From the NCBI GenBank assembly GCA_009859145.1, contig VRVR01000011.1, positions 74,097 to 138,096 of the forward strand: a stretch of 64,000 nt of DNA, written 5' to 3'. Numbering within the stretch: the first letter of the stretch is position 1; every line of letters starts with the position of its first letter. The notes beneath the pieces were generated by a model, which was not told the DNA's origin, searched no databases, and was given only the letters and a program-made list of their open reading frames with translations. Of this stretch, positions 2,695-61,883 are shown one piece after another. The position numbers were made by a program, and so were the translations under genes. The stretch comes from Andalucia godoyi And28 (lineage: Eukaryota; Protista; Jakobida).

Positions 2695-4767
2695 ATGAAT
2701 AACGCACCTTTTGAGTTTCCCTTTCCTTTTCCTCATCATGAAGATGTAGCACAAATCGGAAAAGGTTTGAAGGCTTCATTTGGTCTCCGAGCGGTCGGAA
2801 GTGTGCAGCTTTGCGGGACAGTGCCATCGTTTCGCCGTTTCTCCCCGTGTTTCGAGTCCAGTGCGGTCCATCAGTTTATGCACGTGACGAAGCGGGACGA
2901 AATTCCATCCTTCCTTCACTCTATCCCAAGAGAAGCGATCGAATACTGTGAGAAGGCGGTTTTGGCATCTGTGCATGCTCCGAAATTGCGCTTCTCAAGG
3001 AATTTTAGAGGCAAGAAGCTTGCGGTGTATCCAGATCCGCACAACGCTTCTGTTCCAATATGGACGACTATCCGCGGTCGAACTGCGAGGACGGAAGGAT
3101 CGCTGTGTCGTTTCCGACAGGGCTGCAAGTCTTCCTTGAAGCCGTTGTTCGTGGGCTCCGATCTCTGTTCCGTCAGTGCGGTGCAGTTTTACGACCATGC
3201 TCCGTTTCTGGCAGCTGAAACGTTGGGTGGAGCCGTGCTGGTGGCAAAAGACCAGTCCGTATGCCCCGTCGACGAGATGGACATGGAGGCCGTCTACAAG
3301 CCCAGGCTTGGGTCTTCTACAGAAATTGCGGTGGATCTGGCGATGAATCCCGTATTTCCAGAACTGTGTCTTCTTACGTCTCAATCAAAGTTGATAACAA
3401 TGCCATTGGATGCATGTGCCACTTCGTTTTCGGCTCGTCTGAATCTCCATCAGGATGCTCAGAACCGAGATGCGGCGGTTCTCTACGGCTCCCATCCTCG
3501 GTCGGTGTACATTATGACGCGCAATAGCCTCGTGGAGGTGGATACGCGGGTTGCCAAACTCACGTCTGCTGTCCCGAGAATGTCCCACTCTGGCATGGAT
3601 GCTCTCCAGTCTTTTATCCGTGCCAAACAGAACCCGTTTTTGCTTGCTGTTTCCCACGACAACGGCGTGTCGGTATTCGACACAAGGTATTGGTCTCAGC
3701 CCCTCCACAAATTCGCTGGCCATTTGCATGGCATCGAGCTCCTTGCATTTGTCGATACGGATCGCGTCGTCGTCGGCATGAATGAGAAGTCGCAGCTTTT
3801 TGGGATCGGACTTTCTCCCGCACTGCCTTTCCTTTCACCCACATTTCCACCTCGTACCACCCTTGAACTGGACCGTGCTGCAGGCTCGTGTGTATTTTCA
3901 GATCCATCAGATCCGAATGGAGCATTCGTGGTGGGCGTTCTTCTTGAAAGCGGAATGCTGTTGTCGCAGATGCTGTCTGTGGACTTCGATTTGGACAGCC
4001 AGCAAATGGATTTGGAAACTCCAGAGCTGTCGATTGAAGTTCCTCAGTCGTATTTGTTGGATCGCAATGCTTCTAAATCCTCCGTTCCGGATGCTCGCTC
4101 GACCTCCTCCGATGCATGCGTTCCGCTTCACATCGAAACTGATGTGCTTGACAAAGTTCTGACGGCCACCAGTGGGTGCGAGTCCTTTCTTAGTTCAGAG
4201 AGCGATGTCAGTGTTGGAGACGACATCCTTCTTCCTGTTCCGCAGGAGATTGCCCAGCAGATGTCGCCCGAACCCCGCAGTTCCTCGTGGGCTTTCGACG
4301 GATCCAGTCGCTTGTGGATCCCTCCGTGCTTGCTAGGTTCCGCGGAGGTACCGCCGATGATCGATATCGCCCAAGAGACGGCTCCTCCCTTCTCTCACCG
4401 TGTTGTTCGTTTAGCGGCTCGCGACTTTTCTTCTGAATATCAGAGACGCAAGATCAAGTCTGGGGGAACTACTTCTGGTTCGGATTCTGAACGTCGGCCG
4501 GGTCAGGCCCTCGAGAAACTTCGTTCGGAGCGCCGGCGCAGGATTGGAAGCAGGTACGAGACGAGCGATGCGTCACACCTTCTGTTGGGCCAAATTCTGC
4601 ATTCCCAATCCGAAGGAGCATACGACTCTGCATCCGATCCCAATCGGAATTCTCCGCGCACCCTGGCTCCAAAACGCAAGCGCAAGCGTCCAGAGCGGTC
4701 TGTTTTTGACGCCGATGACAACAATCTTCTTTCCTCGTCCTCTACATCAAAGCCGCGTCGTCGATGA
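2695..4767 (+). CDS. Putative TAF1C/Rrn6-like RNA polymerase I initiation factor (beta-propeller plus low-complexity C-terminus)
   Basis: Long ORF, first in-frame ATG at 2695. WD-like segments YGSHPRSVYIMTRNSLVEVDTR and NPFLLAVSHDNGVSVFDTRYWSQPL resemble the TAF1C propeller; basic C-terminal NLS PKRKRKR. Confidence 0.5.
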   Translation: MNNAPFEFPFPFPHHEDVAQIGKGLKASFGLRAVGSVQLCGTVPSFRRFSPCFESSAVHQFMHVTKRDEIPSFLHSIPREAIEYCEKAVLASVHAPKLRFSRNFRGKKLAVYPDPHNASVPIWTTIRGRTARTEGSLCRFRQGCKSSLKPLFVGSDLCSVSAVQFYDHAPFLAAETLGGAVLVAKDQSVCPVDEMDMEAVYKPRLGSSTEIAVDLAMNPVFPELCLLTSQSKLITMPLDACATSFSARLNLHQDAQNRDAAVLYGSHPRSVYIMTRNSLVEVDTRVAKLTSAVPRMSHSGMDALQSFIRAKQNPFLLAVSHDNGVSVFDTRYWSQPLHKFAGHLHGIELLAFVDTDRVVVGMNEKSQLFGIGLSPALPFLSPTFPPRTTLELDRAAGSCVFSDPSDPNGAFVVGVLLESGMLLSQMLSVDFDLDSQQMDLETPELSIEVPQSYLLDRNASKSSVPDARSTSSDACVPLHIETDVLDKVLTATSGCESFLSSESDVSVGDDILLPVPQEIAQQMSPEPRSSSWAFDGSSRLWIPPCLLGSAEVPPMIDIAQETAPPFSHRVVRLAARDFSSEYQRRKIKSGGTTSGSDSERRPGQALEKLRSERRRRIGSRYETSDASHLLLGQILHSQSEGAYDSASDPNRNSPRTLAPKRKRKRPERSVFDADDNNLLSSSSTSKPRRR

Positions 4768-4810
4768 CACACACACACACACACACACTCTCTCTCTCTC
4801 TCTCTCTCTC
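4766..4810. repeat. Compound (AC)n(TC)n microsatellite
   Basis: Directly visible just after the stop codon at 4767. Confidence 0.9.
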
Positions 4811-5000: not shown

Positions 5001-5294
5001 TCAATTTTTTGGAAGATAGTCTTTTAGGATCGTATTCACCTTGAGAAACTGGCTCTTGTATGCTTTGATGCAAAAAAACTGCTCGGGAGTGTACTTGTAT
5101 CCGGATCCATGGACGAATGGTGCGTCAAACGTCGTCCATACTTGCTGCTCGTTGAAAAACAACGTCTCGTCTCTCCACTTAAACTGAAAAACACACCGAT
5201 TATCGCCATTATCAAACACAATATCAAGGATCTTGTCTGCTCCTGACGGTGTGATCGTAACCGTCAGTGGACCTTCCGTAATTATCTGACTCAT
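5001..5294 (-). CDS. Small hypothetical protein (97 aa), no recognisable family
   Basis: ATG-to-TAA ORF with ordinary globular composition (MSQIITEGPLTVTITPSGADKILDIVFD...), occupying an otherwise empty interval. Confidence 0.55.
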   Translation of the reverse strand: MSQIITEGPLTVTITPSGADKILDIVFDNGDNRCVFQFKWRDETLFFNEQQVWTTFDAPFVHGSGYKYTPEQFFCIKAYKSQFLKVNTILKDYLPKN

Positions 5295-5512
5295 CCAGTT
5301 TTTTCGTCCGTCCTACCTGCCTTGAATACTGAAACGCTCCTTGGTCCTTACTGATTGATTAGGTTTGACTTCTTTTGGGAGGCTGCGGCAAACCGGTGGG
5401 TTCCTCGACGAGCTGCCGGACTGCGCTTCTTTGCGGCCGTAGTCATATCGCAAGTCTCTTGATTTTCCTGTTCAGCTTTTTGAGCGTCAGTGTTTTCTCT
5501 CTTTTTCTGCTT

Positions 5513-5821
5513 CCGCTCGCCCAAAACATGAATCATGATTGGTCATCGGGCAAAGCGACAGGTCCAAGCCACATGTATTTATTTATTTATTTAAATATTT
5601 AGAGCGAGCACCAACTCTTCAATGCAGATTGCTCTGCATCAAAGAGCTATCGCAACCACGAGTTTCTTGGTTCTCAGCATCTTCGGGCATGGTCGGTTTG
5701 AGCTTGTTGGAAAGACCCCTCTTTGGAACCATGGGATGTTTTGGTTCCGATGAAAGGTGCTGCTTGGGGGGGTTCGACAATAATAATAAAAAAACTCAAA
5801 CAGAAAGTATGATGGAAAGAA
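5513..5821 (+). repeat. Dispersed ~310 bp structured element, copy 1 (candidate ncRNA gene or non-autonomous element)
   Basis: Near-identical to 21896-22202; differences seen are 4 substitutions and a 2-nt change in a G run; several perfect hairpins. Confidence 0.9.
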
Positions 5822-6001
5822 TAATAGAAAGGGAAAGAATGAAAGAAATTCTGGACTTGACCTACTGTAAGGAAATCGCGTCTCCCATAAGTCCAAGAGT
5901 AAAAAAGCTTCCGGTATGATGTTGTTTGTTTGACGTTCGTTGTTCGTACACAAAACGGTCAACCGTTGCATAAGAGGGAGCACTTGTAGTGGTGGGTTGA
6001 A

Positions 6002-9000
6002 ATGGATTTTCAAGCTACGCAGCTCCAGTTTGAAGAAGCGTCTCGTGGTGCAGCGGTCCAGTCCTCGAGTCGTGAAAGTTTTGAGCGATACTTGCTTGAA
6101 TGGCGTCATGCACGCCGTGCAGATTCGTTTTGTCGACATATTCTGGAGAATTCTCAGGTTCCAGAAGCTCTCTTTCATGCTGCACTGACCTTGAATTCGT
6201 GCATTGTGCGAGAATGGCCGTTGTTCTCTAGTTCAGAAAAACAGGAGTTGAAGCAGTTCTTGATCATGTACCTGTTGCAAAGGTCTGCGCTGGTTCCTTC
6301 ATTTGTTAAGTCACAGGTGTACAGGGTCTTATCCGTCATGATTAAGCGGTCGTGGTTTGAAGAGTCGGCGGAAGCAAAGAATGGATTCTTTATGCAGCTG
6401 ATGAGTGCGCTTTCAGGATCCGATATCCAAACCAGAAATGTCGCTCTCGGAGTATGGAATTCGCTGATTGACGAGTTTTCGTTTCGAGGAGCTTCCGCAC
6501 TTGGACTCTCCCTCGAATTTCACGAGCAATGTCGATTTTCATTCCAGGAAGGCTGTCTGCTTCCGCTGTTTGTTGCGCTGGCCGAGCTGCTGTCCGCTGC
6601 AGTGCAGCCAACGAATCCAGGAACTGTCGATTCGTCTGCGGATGTGATCGCGTCTTATGTCAATTTAATGTCGAATATCCTCCAGTGGGAGTTCATAGAA
6701 AACACTCAAAAGGCTGCGTACCTTCGAATGCGAGACCGCGGATCGACGTATGCATCGGCGTCGACTGCTTTAACTGCGAACGCCGTCGTGCGACCTCCGC
6801 AGTCTTGGAGGGCTGCGCTGGTGAACGCAAAGACAGTTTATGCACTGTGGTCTGCGCACCAGATTCTGTTTTCTTCTCCAAAGCATGCAGAGATGCCATC
6901 GCATCGCGTGCGAGAAGCGATCTTTCAGATGTGCTCCGTACGCGATGACTTTTTCACACAAGAGAGCAGCTTGTCGTTTGCAACAATGTACGTCGAGCTT
7001 GCACTCTCTCTTGGAGCGCTGTTCTTTGGGTACGCCAAGGCGAACGCAGATTCTGACGTCTGTGGATCCCTGCTCTATGATTCTGCTTTCCTGCTACGGA
7101 AAACATTTACGCACTTCCGGATTAATAAGAGCATGCTGAACTTGCTCGGTTCTGTGCGAGACTTTGCTGTGCAGTTGGTCAACTTTAGGCTAACGGACCA
7201 GACGTATGTGGACGACTCCGTGATTGGCGATGCACTGGAGTTGATTCTGGAAGCATGGGGAGAGATCGTCGCAAGTTACATGAATGTGCACTACCAGACT
7301 CACCGGTCCGTGCTTAATGAAGATCTGTACCAGCAGTTGCGCACTACTCTCCCGACGTACTGCGGCGATGTGTCCAAATCGTATTTGATGATGCAGCTGA
7401 GTCTTGGTCGCAAGGAGGTTCTCGAGTTACTTGGTGTCACGCAACGAAAGCAGGATTCGTCTCGCAGAGAAAAGGAGTGTGACGTGAAGGACGAGGAAGA
7501 GGATGCAGAAGAATATGTTATCGAAGATCGTTTGTCTTCCGTAGCCATTCTCGCGCGCCTGGACCCAGCAGGGATATTTACGTGGCTGGATCAAGCGTTT
7601 GGTCAAGTGACCACATCCTTGCTGCGTTTTTCAGAGATGAAAGTCGAGGATTCGACAGAGCTTGTGCTCTCCCAAGAAGATCTTTACTGGTGCATCATGT
7701 TTGCAGGGCATATCTTTGCGGACGATTGCGATGGCGAGACCCCCTCGCTATCGGACAGTTTTGTTTCATGGGCATCGCAGATCCCTGCATCGGAGGCTGC
7801 GACTTGCCCCATGTTCTCCGTTTTTGCGCGAATTCGGCAACTGGCAGAGTGGGAATTCTGCGGTCACTGCAACGGCCTTTCCTTTTCCGCACAAGCACCC
7901 CCAAACCCCTTTGTTTTAAATTACATTTCTCCTCGAATTTCCGAGGGTCTGTCTTGGTTCTTCGCAAGATGGATTCCCACGTATTTGCATGTTGATTTTG
8001 ACGAAATCATGACGTCGTCTGTTTCTCGCGAGTCTCTTCAGTCTTCTGTGTTGTCGCTTTTCACAGCTTCATCTCCGTATTCGTTTGAATTGGTCAACTG
8101 TCTTTTGGTCCGGTTGCTGTTTTGTCTGCAGACGATGCCGATGGAACCCGCAATAATGGACGCCCAGTGTTCGCTGCTTCAACGCTGCGCATCCAATTCT
8201 TCCATTGCACCGGTGATTGTGCGACTGCCTCTCTTTTGGTCAATTGTCGACAATGTGGCATCGAGCCGGGATGCTCACACCTTGGAAGTTCAACGGCAGT
8301 TGTACCGTGCCTTCGTAGAAATGTGCTCCAGTACTGGCTCGATTGAGGAAACCCAGCAGGCGCTCCAACGATGCCTAGCGCCTCTCCGACAGTTGGTAGA
8401 GACTGCGATATTTGGTGCACTTGGTGTTCAGGCAGACGGCACGTTCTCAGTTGTGCCTTCTGTGGAGACGATCGCGCGCAAGAAGGCGGTGGTTTGCATT
8501 GGCTTGGAACGGCTGCGTGGTGTTTGCCGTGGGTTTAATATGTTCCCTCGTCTGCAAGCATACCTCCCTCTGCTCGCCGGCCCGCTCTTCCGACTGTATC
8601 GCGATGACACCATGGTGTTGTCGTCCATCTCGCGGTTCTTCAAGGATTTTTGCGATGTCCAAGTCGGCTTTCTGGAGCCACAAGAATACATGTACACATG
8701 CAAGATCGTGTTGTCTCTCTTGCAGACGGCCCGTGATTGTGGGGTGGGGACACGCAAGAGCAAGGATGATACGGCCGATGATGATGTCATGATTCTCACG
8801 TCGTTTGTCGAGATCTTGTCGCATTTGTCGTCGAAATTCTATTTTGATGGCTCGTCGTCTGGAAACATTTCGGATGCAGAAGTCGAGGCTGTTGAGAAGG
8901 CGTCGACAGACGTGTTGTTTGAAGGTTTTGCATTGCTGATCCCGGTCCTTCGGTCGTCAAATCGATTATTGTTTGAGCACCTCGATCTGTCCTCCAGGTT

Positions 9001-9529
9001 TTTCGAGCTCCTGAATCAGACCCTTGATGTCCACACTGACAAACTAGCATCCATTTCCACTGGGTTGTTCTCTGCTCTGGTTGACACGGTGCACAATGCC
9101 TTGAACGTCCCGAGCAAGCTGATCGTCTCCAACAGCTTGGATGCTTGGTATGCTTTACTCAAGCATCACATCCAACAAGGCAGCCTTGCGCCGCAACTGG
9201 AGTACAACCCGCTTTTGTTCGAGCAATCCATGAGCGTCCTCATGCGCTGGGCAATGTTTGACGATTTGGATGCTTACCTCGTGAAGTCTCTTTCCCAGTG
9301 CATTCTGGCCCTTATGGTGTGCAACCAGACTGCCTTCCAACGATTCGCAGAAACCATGGTCAGTCAGGAGCAGTCGTCGCCGTACCGCGACCGAATGCTG
9401 GGTGCATTTCAGCGCATTGCCTCTGTCTCGGGATTCCGGCTTTCGATTGACAAGGATTCCCGAGAGAAGTTTGGGAGTGTCTTTGCGGGATTTATGGAAG
9501 AGGTCCGTGCGTTTGTCCGCACAAACTAG
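6002..9529 (+). CDS. XPO4: Exportin-4 family karyopherin
   Basis: 1175-aa helical-repeat protein; N-terminal importin-beta-like region (LFHAALTLNSCIVREW, VLSVMIKRSW, EFHEQCRFSFQE) and C-terminal FxxFxxEVRAFV typical of XPO4. Confidence 0.82.
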   Translation: MDFQATQLQFEEASRGAAVQSSSRESFERYLLEWRHARRADSFCRHILENSQVPEALFHAALTLNSCIVREWPLFSSSEKQELKQFLIMYLLQRSALVPSFVKSQVYRVLSVMIKRSWFEESAEAKNGFFMQLMSALSGSDIQTRNVALGVWNSLIDEFSFRGASALGLSLEFHEQCRFSFQEGCLLPLFVALAELLSAAVQPTNPGTVDSSADVIASYVNLMSNILQWEFIENTQKAAYLRMRDRGSTYASASTALTANAVVRPPQSWRAALVNAKTVYALWSAHQILFSSPKHAEMPSHRVREAIFQMCSVRDDFFTQESSLSFATMYVELALSLGALFFGYAKANADSDVCGSLLYDSAFLLRKTFTHFRINKSMLNLLGSVRDFAVQLVNFRLTDQTYVDDSVIGDALELILEAWGEIVASYMNVHYQTHRSVLNEDLYQQLRTTLPTYCGDVSKSYLMMQLSLGRKEVLELLGVTQRKQDSSRREKECDVKDEEEDAEEYVIEDRLSSVAILARLDPAGIFTWLDQAFGQVTTSLLRFSEMKVEDSTELVLSQEDLYWCIMFAGHIFADDCDGETPSLSDSFVSWASQIPASEAATCPMFSVFARIRQLAEWEFCGHCNGLSFSAQAPPNPFVLNYISPRISEGLSWFFARWIPTYLHVDFDEIMTSSVSRESLQSSVLSLFTASSPYSFELVNCLLVRLLFCLQTMPMEPAIMDAQCSLLQRCASNSSIAPVIVRLPLFWSIVDNVASSRDAHTLEVQRQLYRAFVEMCSSTGSIEETQQALQRCLAPLRQLVETAIFGALGVQADGTFSVVPSVETIARKKAVVCIGLERLRGVCRGFNMFPRLQAYLPLLAGPLFRLYRDDTMVLSSISRFFKDFCDVQVGFLEPQEYMYTCKIVLSLLQTARDCGVGTRKSKDDTADDDVMILTSFVEILSHLSSKFYFDGSSSGNISDAEVEAVEKASTDVLFEGFALLIPVLRSSNRLLFEHLDLSSRFFELLNQTLDVHTDKLASISTGLFSALVDTVHNALNVPSKLIVSNSLDAWYALLKHHIQQGSLAPQLEYNPLLFEQSMSVLMRWAMFDDLDAYLVKSLSQCILALMVCNQTAFQRFAETMVSQEQSSPYRDRMLGAFQRIASVSGFRLSIDKDSREKFGSVFAGFMEEVRAFVRTN

Positions 9530-20596: not shown

Positions 20597-20744
20597 ATTG
20601 CGAACGTCCAGCATCCGTTTCATCTTGTTCTTTTTTTTAATTTATTTAATTATTTAATTTAAATTTTTAAAGGAGAACAAGAGAAGAAGAATCTTCTTTA
20701 CCGCTGTTTAAAAAAGAAGTTGGACATTGGAAACAGCGAGGAAC

Positions 20745-21662: not shown

Positions 21663-21728
21663 TCTACAGAAAGCAGCTTCCTTGCCCCGTGTCCGCTCGT
21701 TCGCCTATTCACATGCATACGCACACAC

Positions 21729-21771
<43 letters not shown>

Positions 21772-21895: not shown

Positions 21896-22202
21896 CCGCT
21901 CGCCCAAAACATGAATCATGATTGGTCATCGGGCAAAGCGACAGGTCCAAGCCACATGTATTTATTTATTTATTTAAATATTTAGAGCGAGCACCAACTC
22001 TTCAATGCAGATTGCTCTGCATCAAAGAGCTATCGCAACCACGAGTTTCTTGGTTCTCGGCATCTTCGGGCATGGTCGGTTTGAGCTTGTTGGGAAGATC
22101 CCTCTTTGGAACCATGGGATGTTTTGGTTCCGATGAAAGGTGCTGCTTGGGGGTTCGACAATAATAATAAAAAAACTCAAACAGAAAGAATGATGGAAAG
22201 AA
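21896..22202 (+). repeat. Dispersed ~310 bp structured element, copy 2
   Basis: Near-identical to 5513-5821, same orientation. Confidence 0.9.
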
Positions 22203-22552
22203 AATGAACGTCAAGAACGAAGCAATTCTTTACAGATGAACAAACTTCCGATATAATGTTTGCTTGTTTGGTGTTCATACACAAAGCTGTCAACCGTCGT
22301 CTCTCACCTTCTTTTTCTTCCACCTTCTTCATCCATGCGTAGCGTGGCGCGTCTCCATAGTGTAGCAGACAACCCTTTACTGTTTGTTGCAACACGCTGT
22401 AAACGCGCACCATTGAACCACAGCTGCGTTTTCGCGGGTTTTTCTAGAAGGGGGAAAAGTCTCGAATCCCAGCGTGTCCATTTCCATTTTTCCTTGCATC
22501 TGTTTTTCTAGCTAATCCGAGGAGGTAGGGAGCAAAGAATCAGCCTGCGGTG

Positions 22553-23290
22553 ATGCTTGCGGTTGTCACTGGGGCGAGCCGGGGGATCGGGAGGAGCATA
22601 TGCAAGTCTCTTTCAGAAAGTGGGTACGTGATAGCTGCTCTGTCAAGATCCAAAGATACTACAGAGCAAATAGCACAAGAAGTGAAGGGGCATGCAGTGA
22701 TCTGTGATGTGCTCTCGTCGGTCGAAATTCAGCAATCGTGGAGCCAAATTGACGAGCTGAAGATCCCGCTTGGCTGTCTGGTCAACTGCGCCGGAATCTC
22801 AAAAGACGGACTGTTGGTCCATGCTTCAGAAGCCGATATCCTAAAAACTCTGCAAACAAACCTCGTTTCCTCCATGCTGATGTCTCGAGAGTTTCTTGCT
22901 CGAGCGATTCGTCACGCCGCGGACACGTCGTCCGTTCATCCAAAGTCCCGTAATCGCAGCATCGTGAACATAGGATCGGTTGTCGGTCTATGCGGAAATG
23001 TAGGCCAGTCGGTCTACGCGACGTCGAAATCCGGTCTTATTGGATTCACAAAGTCCCTTGCGAAGGAGTATGGATCGCGAGGAATTCGTGTGAATGCAGT
23101 GTTTCCAGGGTGGATAGACACCCAAATGACGCACGCAATACAAGCCGCCAGACGCCAAGAACTCGAAAAGCATATTGCGCTGAAACGATTTGGCAGTCCG
23201 GAAGAAATCGCCAGCGTTGTTCGATTCCTGTGTTCTGCGGATGCAAGCTATGTTACGGGACAGATCATCTCGGTGGATGGCGGATTGTAG
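22553..23290 (+). CDS. fabG: 3-oxoacyl-ACP reductase (FabG/CBR4-like short-chain dehydrogenase)
   Basis: TGASRGIG NAD(P)-binding motif, NCAGI, active-site YATSK (YxxxK), VNAVFPGWIDT, YVTGQIISVDGG. Confidence 0.9.
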   Translation: MLAVVTGASRGIGRSICKSLSESGYVIAALSRSKDTTEQIAQEVKGHAVICDVLSSVEIQQSWSQIDELKIPLGCLVNCAGISKDGLLVHASEADILKTLQTNLVSSMLMSREFLARAIRHAADTSSVHPKSRNRSIVNIGSVVGLCGNVGQSVYATSKSGLIGFTKSLAKEYGSRGIRVNAVFPGWIDTQMTHAIQAARRQELEKHIALKRFGSPEEIASVVRFLCSADASYVTGQIISVDGGL

Positions 23291-23434
23291 GAGGCGAAGA
23301 AAGAAACAAAACACAGAGGAGGGAGGGGGGGGGGGGGGGGGTGGCTTTACTTGTACAGAATGATTGGCGGGAAAAGTGTGGGGAAATAGATAAAGAATGC
23401 AGCGACGGAAGAAGCCTTGGGAAGGAGCGTGCAC

Positions 23435-29860: not shown

Positions 29861-30041
29861 ACTCGAGATCCAGTGCGTTTTCCAACCCAAAATTGCAGAC
29901 AGAACACAGAAGGAAAAAAGACGTCGAAAAAGCGTGTTCAGCCTCGCAGAAGGACTCGGATTTCACAAGCATCAAGAACGGAAAACGAGTTGCAAAAGTA
30001 TCAAGCATCAAGCCAAAGGATTCCAAAGTAAATATGCGACT

Positions 30042-30262
30042 ACGCCTACATTGTACACTAACCACGGATAATCATCGCTGATCACCCATAATCAATGCTG
30101 CAACCCAACAACATGCACAGCATGATCGAGAAGGGGGGTAGGCCCCAACACGCCCCTCGGCATGAGAGACGTTCTTAAGATAGATGCTACGTTGCATGGA
30201 CAATAAAAATAAAAAATAAGAAATGAGTGTCGCTGTGCGAGAATGCAGCGCGGCGGCGTGTT
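30042..30262 (+). ncRNA. Candidate structured ncRNA, locus B (homologous to 59021-59398 in the opposite orientation)
   Basis: Four collinear motifs shared with locus A plus hairpins; strand tentative; no known RNA class recognised. Confidence 0.45.
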
Positions 30263-60708: not shown

Positions 60709-60802
60709 TTTCTTTTTTAACAGCAACAACAACAGCTCGGACCAAACGCAACTTGCGGAGGAAAATCCGTGTAATGTGACAAGCCGAGGTCCGATGACGT
60801 GC

Positions 60803-60846
60803 CTAAGAAGAGAAGAAGAGAAGAGAAGAGAAGAGAAGAGAAGAGA

Positions 60847-60893
<47 letters not shown>

Positions 60894-60975
60894 GAGAAGA
60901 GAGAGAAGAGAGAGAAGAGAGAGAAGAGAAGAGAAAGCAGAAAACAGAAAAGAGAAGAGAGAAGAGAGAAAGGAG
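60803..60975. repeat. Purine-rich compound microsatellite (AGAAG)n/(AG)n
   Basis: About 170 nt of almost pure A/G on the + strand. Confidence 0.9.
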
Positions 60976-61214
60976 AAGAGAAAAACGAAAAGGAGCGGAA
61001 AATGGGAAAGTCCGAACAATGACGAGATTTCCCGGCGGAAATTCAAAAGGAAAGGTGCTTTTTCCTCATCATCTACAGCTGATGGCGGTCGAATTGCATT
61101 TCGTTCTTTCTTCTTCGTTTGTTCGGTTTTGCTTTTTTGATTTGCTTTTGATTGATATTTTAATTTTTCCTTTCTGTTTTTGTTTTCCTCGTTTAAGATT
61201 TTGACTTTTTTTAG

Positions 61215-61442
61215 ATGACCGAGGAAAGGCAGTTGCAGCAATGGGCTGTGTTTGACAAGGTCAGACCGCTTTTTCAGCAGAAACAGTCCCGAAAGCACTT
61301 TCCTATTCAGTTTCACTTGTTTAATCTCGGTCTTGCGGTGATTCCGGCACTCGGTCTCATTGCGTTCTTCTCCGTCTTGCGCCAGAATAGAGCCGCCGCG
61401 CTTCGAGGTGATTCGCAATCGGAACTTCCTACAAAGTCCTAA
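61215..61442 (+). CDS. Small single-TM protein (75 aa)
   Basis: ATG follows an AT-rich spacer; hydrophobic FHLFNLGLAVIPALGLIAFFSVL; occupies the otherwise empty GGH-CDC16 interval. Confidence 0.45.
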   Translation: MTEERQLQQWAVFDKVRPLFQQKQSRKHFPIQFHLFNLGLAVIPALGLIAFFSVLRQNRAAALRGDSQSELPTKS

Positions 61443-61883
61443 TGAAGACCGGGGCTTGGAATCCCTCATTCAATGTATCACGTTGCCGCGTTGTCCCAAC
61501 TGTTCATCATCGTCCCTATTATTGGTTGCAATGCTGTTGTCTTTCTCAGATGATTCGATGCGGGGTTCATGACAAGCTCCTCTGTGTCGCTGCATGCTGG
61601 ATGGAATGCCAACGACTCCATCGTCCAGCCTCGTTGTGAAATGTCCCTTGTTTTTGTTTCGTTTTTGTCGCTTCCGGGAAGAAGAAAGAGGAGGAAAGAA
61701 CACGTCACACTGTGTCCCATTATTATGCGTGCAGTGGTGGGAATTCAGCATCGCGGTACAATGTAAAATACATTTTTTTAAATGAAAATAAAAAACAAGG
61801 AAAACGGCTGGGGGGGTTCGGTGAACGATGCCTTCATTTCAATATTACAAAAGAAGAAAGGGGGGGGGGGAGAAGCGGCAACG

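Follow-up and report, generated by a model that had tools for sequence, protein, structure and literature searches.

In the jakobid Andalucia godoyi, a block of about 310 bp is present in two nearly identical intergenic copies and is tentatively regarded here as a lineage-specific gene for a small structured non-coding RNA, with at least two copies and a strand assignment that leans towards minus. Among the readings that were compared, this one is ranked first. It is preferred because the identity between the copies falls sharply to the right of the block, the core contains an excess of secondary structure, the AT-rich tracts beside the core are promoter-like, and the hallmarks of coding sequences and transposons are absent. 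Signatures of Rfam families are absent as well. That the element would be transcribed, from which strand, with what role for the AT-rich tracts and to what function, if any, is what we infer from these properties. The AT-rich tract on one side would act as the promoter, and the structured body of 160–173 nt, with its stable three-way junction, would be the RNA itself. The near-identity of the copies would be kept by purifying selection, gene conversion or both.

Genomic Setting and Extent of the Duplication

The window, i.e., the whole 64-kb stretch of contig VRVR01000011.1 of assembly GCA_009859145.1 that was analyzed, contains 31 long ORFs with about 100–800 bp of spacer between them; 26% of its sequence is intergenic, with a GC content of 44%. 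This gene layout matches that of the A. godoyi nuclear genome, which is approximately 20 Mb in size, poor in introns and densely packed with genes (Gray et al. 2020, PMC7050145). The recognizable genes are ordinary housekeeping genes, including those for an importin-beta-like protein, Maf1, Sec1, Myb, an ABC transporter and Cdc23, and no mitochondrial-looking gene was found among the genes at the ends of the window.

Copy A (5513–5821, 309 bp) and copy B (21896–22202, 307 bp) are 98.7% identical and lie in direct orientation, 16,383 bp apart on a single scaffold, neither block being assigned to a strand. Both intervals had been located correctly in the preliminary description of this DNA, and the duplication is real. 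Copy A is located in a divergent spacer of 707 bp (5295–6001), between a 97-codon ORF on the minus strand without a Pfam match (5001–5294) and the importin-beta-like gene, which starts at 6002 on the plus strand. Copy B is located between the stop codon of Maf1 (21662) and the plus-strand SDR/FabG gene (22553–23290), with another 255 bp of upstream sequence, T-rich and of ordinary character, between the block and the SDR start codon. Without the blocks, both spacers would have about the lengths given for closely packed gene pairs (PMC7050145), and each block therefore looks like an extra unit. When the whole protein collection was searched, the best non-self relative of the SDR was 43% identical, and therefore no close relative of Andalucia is apparently present in that collection. 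A role of the element in supplying an N-terminal targeting exon for the SDR was considered and rejected, since stops occur in all three frames from the acceptor candidate near 22512 to the ATG at 22553.

The copies differ by four substitutions (A5676>G, A5711>G, C5716>T and T5817>A) and one 2-nt indel, which sits in a G run at 5768–5774. The first three substitutions had been listed before, but the fourth and the indel had been missed. By segment, the copies agree at 90 of 90 positions in 5513–5602, at 168 of 173 in 5603–5775 and at 45 of 46 in 5776–5821. On the left, the homology ends abruptly; the identity is high up to its very limit, without any diverged zone. On the right, weaker homology of 65–75% reaches 5966 in copy A and 22297 in copy B. 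This extension had been overlooked when the element was described as about 310 bp long, although that length is correct for the high-identity block. Within the extension, 5822–5852 is 65% identical between the copies, the next 43 nt are present in copy A only, and the diverged right arm of copy A (5896–5966) is 75% identical to, and collinear with, that of copy B (22234–22297).

The whole duplicated unit is about 450 bp, of which the first ~310 bp are near-identical and the remainder has drifted. Identity falls from 303 of 309 positions in the block to 74 of 103 aligned columns to its right (Fisher p=5.6e-14). This sharp drop argues against a single neutral duplication. It is the pattern that would be expected when a gene and its promoter are kept while the flank drifts, and it fits a first 310 bp that is either constrained or continually homogenized. 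Within the 64 kb, no third copy was found with blastn at low stringency (word size 7), and no further copies were found with a covariance model of the minus-strand core with the filters off. Exact DNA matches elsewhere were not found either, using a 24-mer against the JGI metagenomes and a 26-mer against IMG/VR.

Anatomy and Coding Potential of the Block

The block starts with CCGCTCG and ends with GTCAACCGT. Its left arm (5513–5575; 63 bp, 54% GC) is 100% conserved between the copies and contains a predicted hairpin (5514–5557); folded by itself, this arm is not unusually stable (z −0.70). It is followed by an AT tract of 27 bp (5576–5602; 3.7% GC), which is T-rich on the plus strand (TATTTATTTATTTATTTAAATATTTAG) and is similar to an AT tract that precedes Maf1 at 20640–20672 (85% over 33 nt, blastn). 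Next is the body (5603–5775; 173 bp, 51% GC), and then an A-rich tract (5776–5852; 25% GC, 45 A in 77 nt), which is T-rich on the minus strand. The A-rich tract opens with the 18-mer GACAATAATAATAAAAAA (5776–5793) and reads TTTTTTATTATTATTGTC, also given as TTTTTTTATTATTATTGTC, on the minus strand. The copies diverge in it by indels, and their identity drops past 5821. All three features noticed previously, namely an AT-rich tract, the hairpin on the left and an A-rich tail following GACAAT, are present.

In both AT tracts, the T-rich strand is the one leading into the body, and similar T-rich strings are found in sense orientation upstream of several genes of the window. Those similar to the minus-strand reading of the A-rich tract lie 100–340 bp upstream of several minus-strand genes. 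The AT-rich tracts flanking the core are promoter-like, and either of them may act as a promoter. The right-arm motifs GTCAACCG and CTTCCGRTATRATG are not enriched in the window and are thus not general promoter motifs there.

The body contains an ATG ORF of 43 codons (5622–5753 in copy A, 22005–22136 in copy B), which was not mentioned in the preliminary description. The ORF is intact in both copies and is flanked by a TATA-like tract upstream and by the poly(A)-signal-like sequence AATAAA downstream, as would be the case for a tiny protein-coding gene. However, its codon score is 0.123 per codon, a value reached or exceeded by 34% of the intergenic ORFs, compared with a gene median of 0.271, and its codon usage is indistinguishable from that of intergenic ORFs. 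ORFs of at least 43 codons also appear in 27.5% of shuffles, and the changes between the copies, two of them non-synonymous and one synonymous, are those of the neutral expectation. AATAAA is missing from several short convergent spacers of the window and is therefore probably not a general poly(A) signal in this genome. A longer frame, of 126 codons, is broken in copy B by the indel in the G run. No protein relatives of the element were found among 5.8 billion proteins, which were searched with a six-frame translation in which stops were written as X. The 43-codon ORF looks like a chance occurrence, and the block shows no sign of coding, in agreement with its previous characterization as non-coding. 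A micro-gene is ranked last among the readings and is regarded as highly improbable.

Predicted Secondary Structure

Based on folding z-scores and the window scan, the core of the block is predicted to form a three-way junction, tentatively on the minus strand (5603–5764 in copy A). The corresponding core of copy B, supported by folding and RNAalifold, is found at 21986–22147, again tentatively on the minus strand. The predicted core consists of the closing stem P1 (5603–5612/5756–5764), a near-perfect hairpin of 14–16 bp, P2 (5615–5646), and a long irregular arm of ~105 nt, P3 (5648–5752), which includes the helix 5676–5684/5711–5719. With the core boundaries placed at the closing stem, which flatters the z-scores, the 173-nt body has z-scores of −3.87 for copy A and −4.98 for copy B on the minus strand, where the centroid and the MFE structure coincide; on the plus strand they are −1.64 (copy A) and −2.64 (copy B). 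For 5513–5775 (263 nt), the minus-strand z-score is −3.35. Folding of the full 309 nt gives a different predicted structure, with z-scores of −1.70 on the plus strand and −2.13 on the minus strand.

The structure was also compared with the rest of the window by folding every 173-nt window of the 64 kb in 25-nt steps on both strands and regressing the MFE on composition. After the removal of low-complexity artefacts, the minus-strand windows of the element occupy ranks 5 and 12 of 5108 (quantiles 0.0002 and 0.0016), and the core falls in the top 0.1–0.3% of windows. The core is thus predicted to fold well beyond the expectation from its composition, mainly on the minus strand.

Much of this structure is shared by the two strands. 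Approximately 49 of the ~55–60 predicted pairs are Watson–Crick pairs, which are identical on either strand; G·U pairs add 10 on the plus strand and 6 on the minus strand, and the native fold energies of the two strands are nearly equal. The stronger minus-strand z-score is partly due to the plus-strand shuffles, which fold better because the plus strand is G+U-rich. Folding with DNA parameters gives z-scores of −1.92 (plus) and −2.89 (minus), and the predicted fold could equally be a set of inverted repeats at the DNA level.

The preliminary description had assigned the element to the plus strand, on the basis of six helices drawn by hand. Every one of the named segments is complementary as claimed. 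The terminal stem and the hairpin 5622–5639 are predicted with a probability near 1 and the AAAGA hairpin with about 0.6, although this holds only when the core is folded alone. In contrast, CTCA/TGAG, which carries A5676, AACCA/TGGTT and the GGAACCA hairpin have probabilities of 0.00, 0.02 and 0.03, respectively. The hand-drawn structure has an energy of −28.3 kcal/mol, compared with −59.5 for the MFE structure, in which the AACCA and TGGTT segments, two of each, pair crosswise and form the single arm 5648–5752 instead of four small hairpins. The differences between the copies had been taken to preserve the plus-strand fold. This argument is without statistical power, because three random transitions break no pair of the MFE structure of either strand in 33–40% of trials. 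The accompanying claim, that two of these changes would produce mismatches on the minus strand, is true of the hand-drawn fold only, since the minus-strand fold takes all three changes from G·U to Watson–Crick pairs.

Both copies share one minus-strand MFE structure, and the three core substitutions all fall in the helix 5676–5684/5711–5719, in which three G·U positions become G-C, A-U and C-G in copy B. Three random transitions would all fall in pairs and keep them with a probability of 0.03–0.05, and the location of the three substitutions at G·U positions of one predicted minus-strand helix is suggestive at best. The RNAalifold energies of the two strands are equal for practical purposes: −60.05 kcal/mol on the minus strand, with three one-sided changes and a covariation term of −0.75 kcal/mol from two sequences, and −59.75 kcal/mol on the plus strand, with two one-sided changes and a covariation term of −0.5 kcal/mol, also from two sequences. 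Compensatory double changes were found on neither strand with RNAalifold, for which the two copies offer three informative substitutions. The folding energetics, together with an analogy to the locus 30028–30225, lean towards the minus strand, opposite to the earlier assignment.

A Second Structured Locus in the Window

The 18-mer that opens the A-rich tract recurs with 17 of 18 positions at 30199–30216 (BLAST), with a score of 31 compared with an intergenic 99th percentile of 26. This match adjoins the locus 30028–30225, whose structured stretch lies downstream of it on the minus strand. The locus is among the most structured windows of the 64 kb, and its predicted fold is strongly strand-specific, with a minus-strand energy of −66.9 kcal/mol (z −3.71) and a plus-strand energy of −35.7 kcal/mol (z +0.21). 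Homology between its body and that of the element was not detected (6.8 bits and E=3 with the covariance model of the core), and the similarity of the other flank, CAAGCCA...TAAATAT, is not significant against the intergenic background (P=0.51). Rfam searches at E≤10 around 30028–30225 gave nothing credible. The link between the element and this locus is a post hoc observation. If the T-rich 18-mer were an upstream signal of minus-strand structured RNAs, it would orient the element on the minus strand too. It is doubtful that the element and the unrelated locus 30028–30225 would together represent an undescribed jakobid class of small structured minus-strand RNA genes, with the shared T-rich signal TTTTTTATTWTTATTGTC and no Rfam counterpart.

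Comparison with Known RNA Families

At gathering thresholds, Rfam 15 gave no matches in the whole window. At E≤10 over 5400–6000 nothing credible was found, the sole match being that of the miRNA-precursor family mir-2059 to the hairpin 5615–5646, with 17.6 bits and E=1.4, where the threshold is 90 bits. No tRNA was detected with ARAGORN, and no 5S or 7SL match was obtained in the Rfam searches. The Sm site RATTTTTGR, allowing up to one mismatch, and the U1, U2 and U5 signatures are absent from both strands, and the closest sequence to the U6 motif ACAGAGA is ACAGAAA, in the tail. These results agree with the preliminary description, in which no hallmark of U1, U2, U4, U5 or U6, U3, SRP, RNase P/MRP, 5S or tRNA had been recognized. 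For C/D snoRNAs, there is no exact C box (RUGAUGA) on either strand and only one CUGA, on the minus strand. For H/ACA snoRNAs, the 3′ hairpin of the minus strand is not followed by a conserved ACA; an ACA at 5777–5779 is located 12 nt beyond the closing stem. The only string that resembles the CR-I of P/MRP is GAAAGACC, without support from the models. A Pol III A box was not found on the plus strand, and a weak B-box-like sequence, GGTTCGACAAT, has two mismatches, including the terminal CC.

A parallel in organization is offered by multi-copy snRNA and snoRNA genes that have compact upstream promoters, for example the snRNA genes of plants and protists with their upstream element and TATA box. 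As in those genes, at least two near-identical copies are present, a flank of ~90 bp with a TATA-like tract is found beside a structured body of 160–190 nt within the block, and the identity collapses in the flank beyond the body. The sequence GTCCAAGCCACATG may resemble the upstream element of plant snRNA genes. However, the element differs from these genes in that it has no Rfam match at E≤1, no Sm site and no C/D or H/ACA box. A likeness to miRNA-like and other hairpin precursors can be seen in the 14–16-bp hairpin 5615–5646, the ~105-nt arm and the weak match to mir-2059, but the 17.6 bits of that match are far under the 90-bit gathering threshold.

Alternative Explanations

The second-ranked reading, which is considered unlikely, is that of a non-autonomous mobile or dispersed repeat of the SINE, MITE or foldback type, which would have been active recently, would form hairpins at the DNA level and would belong to a larger family elsewhere in the genome. 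The two copies are 98.7% identical and both intergenic, their A-rich, purine-rich tail decays between them as the tails of retroposons do, and the many internal inverted repeats are mostly Watson–Crick and thus the same on both strands. A density of two copies per 64 kb would also fit a family that numbers a few hundred, and transposon- and virus-like subtelomeric scaffolds of A. godoyi are mentioned as omitted from the assembly (Gray et al. 2020, PMC7050145). Nevertheless, the SINE or MITE alternative that had been proposed before finds no support in the hallmarks of such elements. The element resembles a SINE or short retroposon in its length of ~300 bp, its abrupt 5′ edge, its degenerating A-rich tail and its intergenic position, but no target-site duplication of at least 6 nt was found at either copy (30 nt upstream of each copy against 200–230 nt to the right of the tail), there is no tRNA-, 5S- or 7SL-like head, and no A box accompanies the B-box-like sequence. 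Beyond the A-rich tail, the homology continues at 65–75%, unlike a sharp-ended insertion or a uniform decay of the copies. With MITEs and foldback elements, it shares a small size and a strong self-complementarity that is mostly Watson–Crick and equal on both strands. However, its inverted repeat of 9–10 bp (5603–5612/5756–5764) is internal, with the identity between the copies extending 90 bp beyond it on the left and about 57 bp on the right, and no inverted repeat connects the block ends, whether 5513 is taken with 5821 or with 5966. The block ends also lack TG...CA termini, and neither a reverse transcriptase nor a transposase gene was recognized in the window. A solo LTR or a pair of LTRs was rejected on the lack of TG...CA termini and a target-site duplication and on the 16 kb between the repeats, which consist of ordinary housekeeping genes.

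Somewhat less probable than a mobile repeat is a neutral local duplication of ~450 bp of intergenic sequence, the left 310 bp of which would have been homogenized recently by ectopic gene conversion, with the fold being incidental. The short distance of 16.4 kb, the direct orientation and the location on one scaffold would favor this reading, the identity drops at a low-complexity purine tract that would halt a conversion tract, and a function for the element is not demonstrable. Yet gene conversion is inefficient between partners that are ~75% identical, so that homogenization would be needed continuously from the start. In addition, high identity and homology end at exactly the same point on the left, without a diverged zone, and the position of the core in the top 0.1–0.3% of structured windows would be an unexplained coincidence. 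It is improbable that the block serves as a duplicated module for the cis-regulation of the importin-beta-like gene, the 97-aa ORF and the SDR/FabG gene, for instance as a promoter or a nucleosome-free region. Each copy precedes a plus-strand gene, and both have the same orientation. Copy A is in a divergent spacer, where its right arm ends only 35 bp before the importin start codon, and the AT tracts resemble other upstream regions in the window. An identity of 98.7% over 310 bp, however, far exceeds what regulatory modules need, and the neighboring genes are unrelated to each other. Moreover, the block of copy B is 255 bp of T-rich sequence away from the SDR start, and the motifs of the block were not found upstream of other genes in the window. 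Set against these alternatives, the original proposal of an unannotated non-coding RNA is still reasonable in view of the duplication, the absence of coding signs and Rfam matches and the excess of predicted structure, although the evidence that had been offered for it, i.e., the pattern of substitutions on the plus strand, fails.

Significance

Andalucia godoyi is a key organism for the reconstruction of early eukaryotes, and its published annotation is centered on mitochondrial proteins. To our knowledge, the non-coding RNA genes of jakobids are essentially uncharted. If the preferred reading as an RNA gene is true, a multi-copy, lineage-specific structured RNA would be a modest but real addition to the picture of non-coding RNAs in jakobids. 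The element might also represent a universal RNA that has become so divergent that the covariance models miss it. If it is a short mobile element instead, it would join the few repeats that have been described in the compact genome of A. godoyi. Either outcome would be of local interest, with no new principle indicated.

Predicted RNA structures elsewhere in the window

An intergenic region at 30028-30225 is predicted to fold very stably when read on the minus strand, with a minimum free energy (MFE) of -66.9 kcal/mol and a z-score of -3.71. The z-score of the plus strand is only +0.21, so the predicted fold is strand-specific, and it includes a 20-bp hairpin. Read on the minus strand, this structured locus is immediately preceded by the motif TTTTTTATTTTTATTGTC (30199-30216), which matches the flank of the duplicated ~310-bp element at 17 of 18 positions. 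No credible match for 30028-30225 was found in Rfam. The region may be regarded as a candidate unannotated structured RNA, located upstream of the L51_S25_CI-B8 gene.

The stablest window in the entire composition-corrected fold scan is found at 9053-9225 on the plus strand (MFE -69.4 kcal/mol, z-score -4.77), where the centroid structure is identical to the MFE structure. This window is located within the 3' portion of the importin-beta-like coding sequence. The extremes of the scan at 60750-61030 are artefactual, since a purine-only (GA/GAA) microsatellite of approximately 200 bp is present there, in or beside the ORF 60717-61469.

Genes and repeats around the two copies

To the left of copy A of the element (5513-5821), an ATG-initiated ORF of 97 codons is present on the minus strand at 5001-5294. 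Its codon score is modest (0.144 per codon) and no match was found in Pfam. If this ORF is a real gene, copy A would lie in a divergent promoter spacer. Compound (CA)n(CT)n microsatellites are observed at 4767-4810 and 21711-21770. In each case the repeat is located at, or within 50 bp past, the stop codon of the gene upstream of one copy, namely the WD40/EIPR1-like gene for copy A and Maf1 for copy B. Their presence at both genes may reflect chance, a common 3'-UTR feature, or the remnant of an older, larger duplication.

The short-chain dehydrogenase (SDR, FabG-like) gene at 22553-23290 is among the few genes called on its GenBank record. In the protein collection, no close eukaryotic relative was found; the top non-self matches are 43-46% identical, and the named ones among the best are bacterial 3-oxoacyl-ACP reductases. 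This gene and a convergent gene of 522 aa are separated by a 144-bp spacer (23291-23434), in which a homopolymer of 17 G (C on the opposite strand) is observed.

Intergenic composition and polyadenylation

In the intergenic regions throughout the window, both upstream and downstream gene flanks are T-rich on the sense strand, and the sign of the AT skew flips with gene orientation (-0.17 at plus-strand genes and +0.17 at minus-strand genes). Because AATAAA is missing from several short convergent spacers in the window, it is unlikely that this hexamer serves as the usual poly(A) signal of A. godoyi.
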